Sequence record: OR844650.1
Length of the DNA: 64,000 bases
Strand: one strand, 5' to 3'
The notes under the pieces are model-generated. The model searched no databases and was not told where the DNA came from. It saw only the letters and a program-made list of their open reading frames with translations. The translations under genes and the position numbers were made by a program. The number at the start of each line of letters is the position of its first letter. Position 1 is the first letter of the stretch. Below, in pieces: positions 11,571-24,402 of the stretch.

Positions 11571-11578
11571 ACTATTTT

Positions 11579-14639: not shown

Positions 14640-15599
14640 TTAGAGTGAACTTAACAACAAATCTGCTCGGTTTGTAACTTGACGATACCATAAGGAATTC
14701 ATAATTTCTTTTTTAAATTTCTTAGGGTTATCATTTTTCACACTTTTCCAAAGTTTATTAAACGTTGCTAATTTATCAACACCCATTGTATAGGACATTT
14801 CATAAAGAATACGTTGTTGTTCTTTGGTCAGATTTACTGCTTCTTTTTTCTGCATCAATAATAAAAAGTCATTATATGTTCTTTTCATATCTTGCATTAA
14901 AAGTTTATTGGCTTGAGCTTTGGTAATACCGTTTCTGTACTTAATCGCATCAGATTCTTTTCTACCCAAATAATGCCCATAACCTATTGTATAATTACCT
15001 TTCATGTCCTTGTAGGGATGAAATTTAGAATTGTGGAAAGGAACTCCGACTTTCCCACCAAGTAAACGGCGTTTGTTCTTGGACTGAAATTCAATTGAAC
15101 CTTCAGCTTCTTTGATGTGATTGACAATTTCTGGATCATTATAATCAAACAGTACAGTCACATCTGGTAACAATACGTTCTTCAAATCCTCTTTTGTTGG
15201 GATAAAGATACCCTGAGAAGTATGAAGAGTAGCATTTAAATTGATATTTTTCAACAAAATAACATACTCTTCAAGTTGTACATTTTTAGGTTTAAACTTT
15301 TTAGCAATAGAATAATAACTATCACCAGGTTGAACCGTATAATGCTTCTCGCCGCGTGGAACATCCTTTGATATTTCTACCTTTGGTAATTCCTGCTTTT
15401 GAATTTGCGTAACTTGTGGTTTTAAATTGTGTACCTGACTTTCGTCCGATGATGATACACGATCATTTTGAGAAAAACCATAAAATCCAATCGCAGCGAC
15501 AAGTACTGTGCAAACTAGAACACCATAAGTAGTCTTAGTTTTCAGTGCTTTTTTCGCTTGTTTCAAAACGCCTCCTTTGTTGATTGTTAAGATGGGCAA
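14640..15599 (-). CDS. Membrane-anchored LysM + T4-type lysozyme (GH24) muramidase
   Basis: N-terminal TM helix; LysM HYTVQPGDSYYSIAKKF; lysozyme EAEG..YKDMKGNYTIGYGH..SLWYRQVTNRA. Confidence 0.85.
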   Translation of the reverse strand: MPILTINKGGVLKQAKKALKTKTTYGVLVCTVLVAAIGFYGFSQNDRVSSSDESQVHNLKPQVTQIQKQELPKVEISKDVPRGEKHYTVQPGDSYYSIAKKFKPKNVQLEEYVILLKNINLNATLHTSQGIFIPTKEDLKNVLLPDVTVLFDYNDPEIVNHIKEAEGSIEFQSKNKRRLLGGKVGVPFHNSKFHPYKDMKGNYTIGYGHYLGRKESDAIKYRNGITKAQANKLLMQDMKRTYNDFLLLMQKKEAVNLTKEQQRILYEMSYTMGVDKLATFNKLWKSVKNDNPKKFKKEIMNSLWYRQVTNRADLLLSSL

Positions 15600-15734
15600 T
15601 CACAAAGATGGCAAAGAGGCCATTTGTAAAAGCCTCATCGGACTTTCTACAGTACAAAAACGTTCTTTTCAAATGTTTAAGTAGTATAGCATATTTTTAT
15701 TTTATTACAAGACATATTTACTGTAAAAACCACA

Positions 15735-21552: not shown

Positions 21553-21981
21553 TTAGTTAATAATAAAGGTAATTTCAGGATTCATTTCAGAAACTGCATT
21601 GCGTTTACTTCTATCCCATAGTATTCTGTTATTATACAAAGAAGAATCACATACTACAAGTAAGCAATTTCTTAATCTACTTACAGTACTTTGATTATTT
21701 AAATCAGTTTCTGAAATAAAAAATACATTTTCAGGAACTACTAAAGGAATAGATTTATCAAAAAACAAAACTACAATAGGTCTTGTTGTATGAACTGATT
21801 TAACGAAATCCAAAATACTATTATAAAAATTAGTTTCTTTAGTAATTACTGACGGATCTTTAATTCTTTTCAAATATTGCTGTGGTAATTGATGTTCGTC
21901 TTTTATCTGAAACTCAAAATATTCTTTGAATAACATTTGTGTTAATTCGGATTTATCGGATATTTTCGTTGTGTTACTCAT
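21553..21981 (-). CDS. Hypothetical protein
   Basis: 142-aa ORF immediately downstream of the structured non-coding region. Confidence 0.6.
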   Translation of the reverse strand: MSNTTKISDKSELTQMLFKEYFEFQIKDEHQLPQQYLKRIKDPSVITKETNFYNSILDFVKSVHTTRPIVVLFFDKSIPLVVPENVFFISETDLNNQSTVSRLRNCLLVVCDSSLYNNRILWDRSKRNAVSEMNPEITFIIN

Positions 21982-22121
21982 TCACTTCGTTCTCTCGTAA
22001 CTCAAGAAGTCACTGCGTTTACTTCGTAAACTAGTTCCTTCTGAAAATGATAATGTACTTTAAAAACTTGACGGGATTTGTTGAGGACTATTACATCCCC
22101 CCGCAGGGGAATGAAGGTAAT

Positions 22122-22147
22122 AAAAAAGAGACAATTAAGTCTCTCTT
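22122..22147 (-). terminator. Intrinsic terminator
   Basis: Minus strand AGAGAC-TTAATT-GTCTCT followed by a T-run. Confidence 0.7.
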
Positions 22148-22183
22148 GACGATGATGGCATCGGATATTATCGAATTGCGAAT

Positions 22184-22365
22184 TTCTCAAATTTTGGACG
22201 GATCTTTCTTGTACCAAAATTTAGAGAGCGAAAGCGGGTTGCTCGGTTTCTCTCTATCGCAGTCATATGCAACGGTCGCTGGTCTTTTCATCAACAGCAC
22301 TCAGTACTAACTCTATTCGATCAAAGTAGTACTTGTTCTCAAATTTTGGACGCAACTTTCTTGTA
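22184..22365. repeat. 30-bp direct repeat, two copies (22184-22213, 22336-22365)
   Basis: TTCTCAAATTTTGGACG-(GATC/CAAC)-TTTCTTGTA; 28/30 identical. Confidence 0.9.
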
Positions 22366-22642
22366 AAAATTGCGTCCGCTATCCTTGAACTCCCTTAGCA
22401 AATCTGGTAAGGTGCGAACCTTATACATCTATCTAGGAACTCTCTGTATGCTTATCGGAGTTCTTTATACAGCCGTGTCGCCGTGATTCGTGGTCTTACA
22501 TCGTGTTTGTTTGAATGCCAGTACTCTAACAGGTTTCTTCTGCTGTTCGCTACAACGGTAAAGCTCATCTATCCTTTACATTTTCAAGAGAAGTAGGTTC
22601 TCAGTGTCCATTTTTCAATGTCCGTTGTCATTTTCTATATAC

Positions 22643-22670
22643 ATTATATCATTGGAACATATAATGTCCC
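22643..22670 (-). promoter_or_regulatory. Promoter GGGACA-N16-TATAAT with extended -10
   Basis: GGGACA ttatatgttccaatga TATAAT. Confidence 0.65.
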
Positions 22671-22671
22671 A

Positions 22672-23070
22672 TTACATGTATACTTTTTTTAAATCCTTAG
22701 AACAACGATCAAAAATTGTGTTTATGAATTCAACATCTTCGATAATATTCGAATCGTTAGCAACATTTTCATTTCTTGTCGTGTTCCTATATGTGTGTTC
22801 AGGATGATTGTATACCACCTTGACTACATTATTTAGGTCTATAAAATTTGACGTTTTTTGCGTATATGAAGCCTGAAGCTTGATGAGTTTACCATCATTC
22901 TCAAGATTGGTTTTATGAATTAGTTCTTCAATACCAGTTAAATGGCTATAGCTATCTTTTTCTTTTACAAAAGTAATAGTAACAAGAACTGCTTTCTCAT
23001 CTCCCATATCGGAAATGTTTTTTACAGCACTGATAATTTCTAAGTTTGAAAAATCTAATTCTTTAAGCAT
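22672..23070 (-). CDS. Hypothetical protein
   Basis: 132-aa tiling ORF. Confidence 0.6.
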   Translation of the reverse strand: MLKELDFSNLEIISAVKNISDMGDEKAVLVTITFVKEKDSYSHLTGIEELIHKTNLENDGKLIKLQASYTQKTSNFIDLNNVVKVVYNHPEHTYRNTTRNENVANDSNIIEDVEFINTIFDRCSKDLKKVYM

Positions 23071-23480: not shown

Positions 23481-24092
23481 TCAATCATGTTTATTCAATT
23501 TCTTCTGTTCTTTTTTCAAAGCTTTCATATGACGACCAAACTCTCGAACATGCCATAGATGATCAGTTTCCCATAATTCTTGACGTAACCTACGTTCTTC
23601 TAGTAGTTTCGACTTGTCAATGTTATTTTTCTTTTTTTGTACATTAAAGAAATTATTCATATGTTCTTGGAGAAGATTACGACCTTTAACTTTCTCAAGA
23701 AACTCATCAACTGTTTCAGTTTTATTCGAACGTAGTTGATTACATCTGGAGCACATAGTATTAAAGTTTGACTCTAAATCAGGTCCACCCTTAGATGCCA
23801 GATGATTATGGTCAACTGTCATTAAAACTTCATAAAGACCACATACAGCATATACATTTAAATGTGGTTTACCATATACTGGATCAGAACAAAATGAACG
23901 TTCAATGCGTACTTCAGTGGCTTCAATCCCACATGCCACGCATTTTGGATTCTTAATAAATGTAAGAACTTTTTGTGGGAAATACCTAAAAGTAATTCCA
24001 TTTAAAGTGTAGCGTTTCATCTTAGTACTTCGTTGATTTAATTCGTCAAGAAGTGATAATTTTGTCGTATAGTAAACATGATATTTGTTCAT
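23481..24092 (-). CDS. HNH endonuclease-domain protein
   Basis: CVACG..TVDHNHLASKGG..NFNTMCSRCNQLRSN. Start moved to ATG 24092, which has an AAGGA SD. Confidence 0.8.
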   Translation of the reverse strand: MNKYHVYYTTKLSLLDELNQRSTKMKRYTLNGITFRYFPQKVLTFIKNPKCVACGIEATEVRIERSFCSDPVYGKPHLNVYAVCGLYEVLMTVDHNHLASKGGPDLESNFNTMCSRCNQLRSNKTETVDEFLEKVKGRNLLQEHMNNFFNVQKKKNNIDKSKLLEERRLRQELWETDHLWHVREFGRHMKALKKEQKKLNKHD

Positions 24093-24093
24093 T

Positions 24094-24402
24094 TTATTCC
24101 TTGATATTGATTTTAATATCTTTACCTTGTAAATCACGAATAGTTTTAATCAATGCGTCATGTTTTAAAGCACATTCATTGTAGACTGCATCCCAACGAG
24201 TAAGTACTTTAAGAATTTCTGCACCATCATAACCTTTAAAACCATTTTTGTCAATCATAATTTTTTGTGGTAGAGGTGTATCATCATCACATCTTTCTAA
24301 CAGAATTTCTTGTTTAATTGGAGCAGGGGATTGTAGTTTTACTTGTTCGGCACATCCACTTATAATTAAAAAAGAAATAAACGGAACTAATAATTTTTTC
24401 AT
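24094..24402 (-). CDS. o-spanin (Rz1-like lipoprotein)
   Basis: Lipobox FLIISG-C, Pro-rich mature part, late Cys; overlaps the i-spanin stop. Confidence 0.75.
   Translation of the reverse strand: MKKLLVPFISFLIISGCAEQVKLQSPAPIKQEILLERCDDDTPLPQKIMIDKNGFKGYDGAEILKVLTRWDAVYNECALKHDALIKTIRDLQGKDIKINIKE

Follow-up and report, generated by a model that had tools for sequence, protein, structure and literature searches.

A probable family of highly structured RNA genes, present in several copies in Rak2-like jumbo phages and at one end of bacterial integrative islands

Introduction

What does a jumbo phage keep in a gap of 690 nucleotides (nt) that contains no open reading frame (ORF)? The gap in question, at positions 21982-22671, separates the minus-strand genes 21553..21981 and 22672..23070 in a window of 64,000 nt, the whole stretch of DNA analyzed here. 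The window has the exact sequence of bases 186001-250000 of Escherichia phage ECO103 4-12-1 (sequence record OR844650.1) and is 97-100% identical to the phages PBECO4, phAPEC6, JP4, and 121Q, 350-kb jumbo myophages of the genus Asteriusvirus. An original prediction, made from the letters of the window, had proposed that the gap encodes a large structured minus-strand noncoding RNA with its own promoter and terminator. As candidate functions it named a scaffold, a sponge, a primer RNA, and a transcribed replication origin, and both of the leading candidates that we arrive at below are among them.

We conclude that positions 22068-22671 of the minus strand very probably belong to a genuine family of structured RNA genes, as a stand-alone gene for a highly structured noncoding RNA that is one of four diverged paralogs in the genome. 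Copies across phage genera, compensatory changes, an asymmetry between G.U and A.C pairs, and the lack of a conserved ORF bear out the central proposal. Three findings go beyond it, namely that the gene belongs to a multicopy family, that a structured tail extends to 22068, and that bacterial integrative islands carry the same RNA. Large RNAs that fold intricately and have no known function are rare, and RNase P, transfer-messenger RNA (tmRNA), OLE, GOLLD, and ROOL each opened new biology. The presence of this deeply conserved family in the culturable coliphages PBECO4, 121Q, and phAPEC6 makes it open to genetics, biochemistry, and cryo-electron microscopy (cryo-EM).

Results and discussion

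Position and copies of the element

The gap had been described as the largest break in the tiling of minus-strand genes. The only longer stretch free of ATG-initiated ORFs (15006-15734, 729 nt) is covered by a minus-strand gene with a TTG start (14640..15599), and the 690-nt gap is therefore the largest true break. The predicted rise in guanine-cytosine (GC) content is likewise present, with values of 0.40-0.41 over 22000-22600 and 0.25-0.35 in both flanks.

The search for paralogs was based on a 351,992-bp genome reassembled from the unannotated record OR844650.1. The window copy (copy A, at ~208 kb) has three paralogs, at ~18.2, 128.2, and 261.4 kb, all in the same orientation. The four are ~70% identical, and each sits in its own ORF-free gap of at least 600 nt. 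All four are found by BLAST, nhmmer, and a covariance model, the latter two returning exactly four. The covariance model of the core, R1 (136 positions, 29 pairs), scores the four at 102-124 bits (window copy, 121.7) and finds nothing else in the genome at E<=1; over phage, metagenome, and island loci, it gives 98 matches at 79-146 bits. Our working definition of a family member is a match to the R1 core together with the promoter and the G-run tail described below, and the window copy has all three.

By BLAST, the element occurs at 3-5 places per genome in 62-72 phage records, all of them Rak2-like jumbo phages of 310-386 kb, whose hosts are Escherichia, Salmonella, Klebsiella, Cronobacter, Erwinia, Yersinia, Pectobacterium, Serratia, and Xanthomonas. 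When IMG/VR and metagenomes were scanned for motifs and the results passed to nhmmer, the number of distinct full-length members rose to 49 and later to 82, with a median pairwise identity of 62%. A 14-base motif was too unspecific in IMG/VR, so longer patterns were used there; the collections were entered through exact motifs and may therefore miss divergent members or other genomic contexts. In annotated genomes these loci are blank or carry short "hypothetical proteins," and we consider this annotation to be wrong, the small ORFs being spurious. One divergent member of higher GC content (L230:6540-7030) comes from metagenome contig OERT01000030.1, which also encodes a Dda-like helicase, dihydrofolate reductase, and virion proteins. 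It keeps the extended -10 element, AAAGGGAG, the 3' core, and the G-run tail, and its 5' half is different. About 10 more metagenome loci match the core only.

The flanking genes differ between copies, which bears on the idea that the element is a cis-acting 5' leader of the downstream minus-strand genes, either riboswitch-like or acting by put-like processive antitermination. Such a role would suit copy A, where the co-oriented gene 21553..21981 starts ~90 nt after the tail, and it would suit the presence of a terminator inside the conserved unit. The downstream genes change from copy to copy, however, and copy B is convergent with plus-strand baseplate genes, as are its orthologs in Serratia phage BF and Salmonella phage Munch, with nothing co-oriented downstream; in bacterial islands, the copies are convergent with genes for a CI-like repressor or ParB-like proteins. 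As this convergence is seen in several copies, we reject a leader or antitermination role, which these arrangements have largely refuted and which we regard as very improbable. Judged by gene order, the element is not the leader of a neighboring gene.

Covariation, strand, and coding potential

The 3' core domain (22166..22335, minus strand) is the most conserved part of the element. Within it, 39 specified pairs in seven helices were tested on a sequence-only MAFFT alignment of 49 sequences. The paired cells amount to 98.3%, as compared with 78.9% after shuffling and 37-50% when the partners are slid by 1-3 columns. Changes on both sides are seen in 31 of the 39 pairs, there are 295 compensatory cells as compared with 71, and none of 500 shuffles reaches any of these measures. 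Aligned by covariance model, 79 distinct sequences from phages, metagenomes, and islands give 98.4% paired cells (67.4% shuffled) and 699 compensatory cells as compared with 185; this alignment is fitted to the model and so leans toward structure. For the 5' half (22387..22633, minus strand), RNAalifold on 42 sequences yields 35 pairs, 26 of them with compensatory changes. Pairs are kept above both shuffled and slid controls, as is expected of structured RNAs in general, and the covariation supports ~75 base pairs, including two pseudoknots, with ~16 helices kept by compensatory changes. The original prediction had put forward covariation in relatives as a way to check it, and both halves of the element are conserved and covary.

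The 3' core contains 179 G.U cells and 2 A.C cells. Read on the opposite strand, the excess would be of A.C, and the selected molecule is therefore the minus-strand RNA. Compared with shuffled sequence, the minus strand folds with a z-score of -4.1 and the plus strand with one of -2.0. As read from these substitutions, the selected form is a folded minus-strand RNA and not a protein, duplex DNA or DNA hairpins, or a plus-strand transcript.

If the element were not an RNA gene, it might be a protein gene that has decayed or gone unrecognized, or a DNA element present in several copies, such as the remnant of a mobile element or an array of protein-binding sites. Some genome records do annotate short hypothetical proteins here, and the terminator lies between two TGACG motifs of the plus strand. 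However, no ORF is conserved across members, whose longest ORFs over all frames have 28 to 101 amino acids; the short ORFs listed in the original prediction are present and likewise lack conservation. Only 17% of indel events have a length divisible by three. An 87-amino acid plus-strand ORF of the window has a stop codon in phage A4, and its substitutions at codon positions 1, 2, and 3 (16, 9, and 11) show no codon-position bias. Compensatory changes with a 179:2 excess of G.U over A.C would also be unexpected for duplex DNA sites or cruciforms, and we find a non-RNA explanation scarcely credible.

By covariance-model comparison, the predicted RNA matches no described family. The 4227 models of Rfam 15, a set that includes RNase P, tmRNA, group I and II introns, 6S, CsrB, ROOL, GOLLD, OLE, and HEARO, gave no match in the whole window at gathering thresholds; this was the search proposed along with the original prediction. 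At E<=10, the element region returned only small nucleolar RNA and long noncoding RNA noise, and at E<=1, none of nine family members had a match inside the element. ARAGORN found no tRNA or tmRNA gene in the window. These searches agree with the earlier statement that the region has no hallmarks of tmRNA, RNase P, tRNA, or a group I intron. We found no description of this RNA in the literature, and it could stand anonymously in large candidate catalogues such as PMC10690425.

Promoter, terminator, and tail

The promoter, first noticed as GGGACA-N16-TATAAT (22670-22643), is in place and is TG-extended, which gives the layout TGGGACA-N13-TGaTATAAT (22671-22643, minus strand). The -35-like element TGGGACA (22665..22671) is of the TGAAACG type and appears as TG(G/A)(G/A)AC(A/G) at the aligned position in all members, including the island copies. 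In the extended -10 element TGaTATAAT (22643..22651), TATAAT is invariant and TG is nearly invariant in 49 sequences. Every family member has TGnTATAAT on the strand that matches the window minus strand, with TG(G/A)(G/A)AC(A/G) upstream. Taken singly, a consensus promoter match at this place is not above chance (6 found, 7.4 expected). For the strict class TG[AG][AG]AC-N13-17-TGnTATAAT, to which it belongs, the genome has 15 sites where 0.15 are expected, and every one of them is on the minus strand. Phages CBB and GAP32 are reported to have a TGAAACG class of "divergent RpoD-like" promoters, which often precede DNA-synthesis genes (PMC5259590). The element carries a predicted sigma-70-like promoter of this phage TGAAACG/extended -10 class, and the usual 7-nt spacing to the -10 hexamer places the putative transcription start at ~22636 (22634..22638, minus strand).

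Within the window, strict-class sites on the minus strand start at 11571, 22671, 44508, 59199, and 61448 (genome coordinates 197571, 208671, 230508, 245199, and 247448). Another, at genome position 34142 outside the window, precedes tRNA genes. In paralog C (genome ~262020-262050) and at loci L150, L163, and L166, a GC-rich hairpin and U-run stand right after the -10 hexamer, and the predicted RNA start therefore falls inside the 5' arm of the hairpin; this arrangement looks like the terminator of the upstream gene nested with the RNA promoter. A candidate plus-strand promoter at the left end, TTGACG-N17-TTACAT, was rejected, as its -10 is poor and the G.U test selects the other strand.

The terminator had been predicted at 22122-22147, and an intrinsic-terminator-like feature is indeed read there (22120..22147, minus strand). 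It consists of a hairpin (22143-22128) and U6 (22127-22122). The stem, GAGAC/GUCUC (22143-22139 with 22132-22128), shows compensatory changes at all five pairs in 25 relatives and is followed in them by U6-7. Positions 22143-22122 thus represent a predicted intrinsic (Rho-independent) terminator, one that does not appear in the list of a consensus terminator scanner. The hairpin and U-tract are present in about half of the phage copies, including the window copy. In paralogs C and D and in some island copies, the hairpin is missing and the U-rich tract is kept.

A conserved tail (22068..22119, minus strand) extends the structured region by ~55 nt past the terminator. It is kept in all copies, including those without the terminator hairpin, in the islands, and in the divergent metagenomic variant. 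The tail contains a C-run/G-run hairpin, UCAUUCCCC / GGGGGAUGU, at 22114-22093, in which the G-run is invariant, and it ends in ...AAAUCCCGUCAA, with 22068 as the last base (family form ...AAAUC(C/U)CGUCA(A/G)). U.G pairs in the tail stem fit a minus-strand RNA, and some transcripts therefore probably read through the terminator. The predicted length of the RNA is ~517 nt to the U-tract and ~569 nt with the tail; the 5' end is a prediction, and the 3' end is ambiguous between the U-tract and the end of the tail.

Architecture of the fold

All helices are given in the sense of the minus strand. RNAalifold covariation defines, in the 5' half, P1 (22626-22621 with 22559-22554), a hypervariable and poorly aligned hairpin P1a (22620-22608), P1b with an invariant GAAAAUGUA loop (22591-22572), P2 (22546-22542 with 22473-22469), P2a (22532-22529 with 22484-22481), and the hairpins P3 (22463-22438) and P4 (22423-22408), together with an invariant CUAAGGGAG at 22398-22390. 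A variable linker (22336..22386) leads to the 3' core. The core contains hairpin P5 (22332-22304), P6 (22299-22277), P7 (22261-22257 with 22181-22177), P8 (GAGAG/CUUUC, 22254-22250 with 22234-22230), and P9 (22227-22225 with 22187-22185). Two pseudoknots are 100% paired and show compensatory changes. PK1 joins the P5 loop (22321-22315) to the 3' end of the domain (22176-22170), and PK2 joins GUUGC (22273-22269) to GCAAC (22242-22238) inside the P8 loop. A pseudoknot of the full P5 loop may alternate with the closed hairpin instead of coexisting with it. The alignment is poor at P1a, at the optional modules, and at the hairpin just before the terminator.

The optional module is a 30-nt direct repeat, UACAAnAnAGnUnCGUCnAAAAUUUGAG in the RNA sense, that is duplicated within the element. 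Copy 1, at 22336-22365 in the linker, forms a local hairpin (22377-22348) and is 93% identical to 22184-22213; the second copy (22184-22222) is enclosed by P9. In other family members, the module may occupy one of these two insertion points, both, or neither. Its sequence is conserved, and its pairing differs between the two sites.

These assignments support the earlier list of hairpins in part. The hairpins at 22408-22423 and 22437-22463 and the pairing AGTACT..AGTACT (22303-22333) are confirmed by covariation, and those at 22348-22377 and 22189-22222 turn out to be located in the two copies of the optional module. A proposed AGAGAG..CTCTCT pairing did not hold and is replaced by P8 and the PK2 pseudoknot.

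The fold contains invariant unpaired nucleotides (GACCGU, ACCCGC, GAUGAG, and CUAAGGGAG), and the motif YCGUCAR occurs twice, at the bases of two hairpins near the 3' end. A double-pseudoknotted core with such nucleotides would be in keeping with a catalytic RNA of a new ribozyme class, either self-processing or acting on phage or host RNA, and the repeated YCGUCAR could mark processing sites. Against this, no known ribozyme model in Rfam matches, the sequences hold no evidence of cleavage or ligation, and the multiple gene copies argue for stoichiometric rather than catalytic action. We consider a ribozyme quite unlikely.

Bacterial integrative islands

Motif scans of one genome per bacterial species, together with BLAST of 5426 complete Escherichia coli genomes, located the RNA outside phages. 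Full-length members are present in Serratia fonticola (complete chromosome), a Serratia sp., Silvania hatchlandensis, and a metagenome-assembled genome of Enterobacteriaceae, and in 2 of the 5426 E. coli genomes by BLAST. In every bacterial case, the RNA lies at one end of an integrated element of 8-11 kb. Island RNAs, such as those at L253:10778-11449, L258:12031-12699, L259:11927-12616, and L179:3644-4265, preserve the full architecture, promoter type and tail included.

The islands come in three layouts. The first runs from a tyrosine integrase through variable cargo (TIR and nSTAND NTPase, nSTAND3, or HamA/HamB), a small serine recombinase, an LprI-like protein, an unknown protein, a Cro-like helix-turn-helix protein, and a CI/S24 repressor to the RNA and host thiM. 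The second starts at host arsC and continues with a large serine recombinase, the RNA, cargo (an AEP-reverse transcriptase pair, or HamA/HamB with AbiGi), and a small serine recombinase, and the third consists of a large serine recombinase, two ParB-like proteins, the RNA, and host rof/tilS. In E. coli LR-29-1, the island lies between ffs and ybaA. The integration sites seen are thus thiM, arsC, rof/tilS, and ffs.

These loci (L253-L259 and L176-L179) form an Enterobacterales island family with interchangeable anti-phage cargo, comprising Hachiman-like HamA/HamB, nSTAND/Avs-like NTPases with TIR, the AEP-reverse transcriptase pair, and AbiGi. Their conserved backbone combines an integrase or large serine recombinase with a small serine recombinase, a CI/Cro-like switch, and the RNA, which lies at one end. 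The only Rfam match in the island loci is a host thiamine pyrophosphate riboswitch (L176:5385-5481) before thiM, beside the island end, which limits the integration site to L176:5482-6250.

No island protein has a homolog in the phage, so that phage and islands share no protein partner. The backbone proteins have no informative Pfam or PHROG matches, and no replication protein is recognizable among them. In a midpoint-rooted FastTree phylogeny, which we treat as suggestive only, the island RNAs fall at three separate places among the phage paralog clades. The RNA as the sole component common to virulent jumbo phages and defense-carrying islands points to a previously undescribed link at the level of RNA, which could reflect piracy, decoy action, or shared host manipulation.

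Possible functions of the RNA

In the explanation that we favor, although we put its chance at about even, the RNA is an abundant scaffold or decoy that acts in trans and stoichiometrically. The RNA would work through its three-dimensional fold, with a partner encoded elsewhere, which might be a host factor, a component of host defense, or a phage protein supplied in trans, and several promoter-driven copies per genome would provide dosage. We favor this proposal because no cis element needs a fold nearly so elaborate and because the gene is self-contained. Complex folds with invariant unpaired motifs are typical of RNAs that work via tertiary structure, such as ROOL, GOLLD, OLE, and ribozymes. 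As the RNA is the only component common to phages and islands that share no protein, the partner points to the host or to supply in trans.

Several observations weigh against a trans-acting scaffold or decoy. Such an RNA has no obvious need of 3-5 diverged intact copies, and the copies, ~60-70% identical, were already distinct before the phage genera split and are still intact. The conserved tail, with its invariant G-run past the terminator, is not explained by action in trans. An exact-match search of the phage genome gave no complementary sites for the invariant loops, and no partner, ligand, or target was found. Public RNA runs, searched as Logan contigs, contained sparse metatranscriptome fragments and one run with DNA-like coverage and are uninformative as to a discrete transcript. 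In that run, apparent joints and raised depth at 22115-22460 come from paralog contigs collapsed on copy A and not from splicing or deletion. A base-pairing regulator of phage mRNAs was rejected on the same lack of exact complementary sites for the invariant loops, which is a weak test.

Some of these features would be accounted for by the main alternative, an RNA-primed replication origin. It is possible, if unlikely, that the 350-kb genome has several origins and that each copy is one of them. The structured transcript, or RNA that reads through into the G-rich tail, might then form a persistent RNA-DNA hybrid, and with the same limited likelihood the hybrid might prime leading-strand synthesis and load a T4-like helicase, in the manner of ColE1 RNA II and T4 oriF/oriG. 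Under such a scheme, which we hold equally tentatively, the islands could be minimal satellites that carry a helper phage origin and are amplified and transduced, or origin decoys that titrate the replication machinery. An origin would explain better than a trans-acting RNA why there are multiple anciently diverged copies, why this promoter class is used, why a G-run tail is followed by AT-rich DNA, and why islands hold a single copy. The 3-5 copies per genome are dispersed and kept as distinct ancient paralogs, and their promoters belong to the class that has been reported to precede DNA-synthesis genes in phage CBB. T4 oriF and oriG also use a middle-type promoter. Past the terminator comes the invariant purine-rich G-run hairpin and then an AT-rich stretch, with 24.6% GC over 50 nt after the tail as compared with 34% in the genome and 41% in the RNA core. 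The islands, which have no recognizable replication gene, hold their one copy at the end, next to the integrase or repressor, and the interleaving of island RNAs with phage paralog clades suggests repeated exchange. Plasmids with a T4 origin were reportedly amplified and packaged by T4 in work by Kreuzer and Alberts.

Several points speak against an origin. Known origin transcripts need no two-pseudoknot fold with many invariant unpaired bases. A good intrinsic terminator stands ~25 nt before the G-run in about half of the phage copies, including the window copy. The AT-rich stretch after the tail is ordinary for intergenic DNA, as the 5th percentile of random 50-nt windows is 22% GC. Finally, no related sequence was found among 72,556 plasmids, and an origin of the plasmid type was rejected on this result.

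Comparison with known RNAs

ROOL, GOLLD, and OLE (Rfam RF03087, RF01998, and RF01071; cryo-EM, bioRxiv 10.1101/2024.12.08.627333) resemble the element RNA in several respects. They too are RNAs of ~0.5 kb with a many-helix, pseudoknotted, covarying fold, encoded by stand-alone genes in phages or mobile elements, with no obligatory adjacent partner protein and with unknown function. The element RNA differs from them in that it has no covariance-model similarity to them even at E<=1, occurs as 3-5 diverged copies per genome, and is confined to Rak2-like jumbo phages and a small number of Enterobacterales islands.

With ColE1 RNA II and T4 oriF/oriG, the element shares a promoter-driven transcript of ~0.5 kb, here a predicted one, and a G-rich segment on the 3' side that could hybridize to the template. 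Like the element, T4 has several origins per genome, and the promoter class of the element is linked to replication genes. Unlike those origins, the element has a far more elaborate fold and a terminator before the G-run, and it shows no sequence relation to them and no plasmid homolog.

A distantly related jumbo phage, PA5oct, likewise has four ORF-less regions. These were defined by RNA-seq as ncRNA001-004 (236-619 nt), and two of them account for 2-5% of phage reads (PMC7318152). Homology to them was rejected, as nhmmer found none and the best match to the core model (11.4 bits, E 0.07) was on the wrong strand.

RNA anti-CRISPRs, which are solitary repeat units, and RNA decoys are similarly carried by phages and other mobile elements and, as the element RNA might, would act stoichiometrically. 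The tail hairpin, with its C-run, short loop, G-run, and AUGAAA, loosely recalls what we take to be a type I-E repeat; this is an unsupported lead for which no repeat comparison was run. Unlike RNA anti-CRISPRs, the tail is nearly invariant across phages whose hosts differ in CRISPR type, and it is only a small part of a 0.5-kb fold.

Like the element RNA, tmRNA is large and pseudoknotted, and it is sometimes phage-encoded. An 11-nt plus-strand string, GACGGGAUUUG, recalls what is presumably the 5' part of E. coli tmRNA, a resemblance that the negative ARAGORN and Rfam searches do not support. A tmRNA was rejected, as this resemblance is on the strand excluded by the G.U test and the element has no acceptor stem or tag reading frame.

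Neighboring genes

An HNH endonuclease gene, annotated in 121Q and JP4, lies at 23481-24137 (minus strand), 0.8 kb upstream of the element. No link between this gene and the RNA is seen, as the other three copies adjoin different genes. Farther downstream, the TTG-initiated gene at 14640-15599 (minus strand) encodes 319 amino acids and starts after a strong AAGGAGG ribosome-binding site; gene callers that accept only ATG would truncate or miss it.

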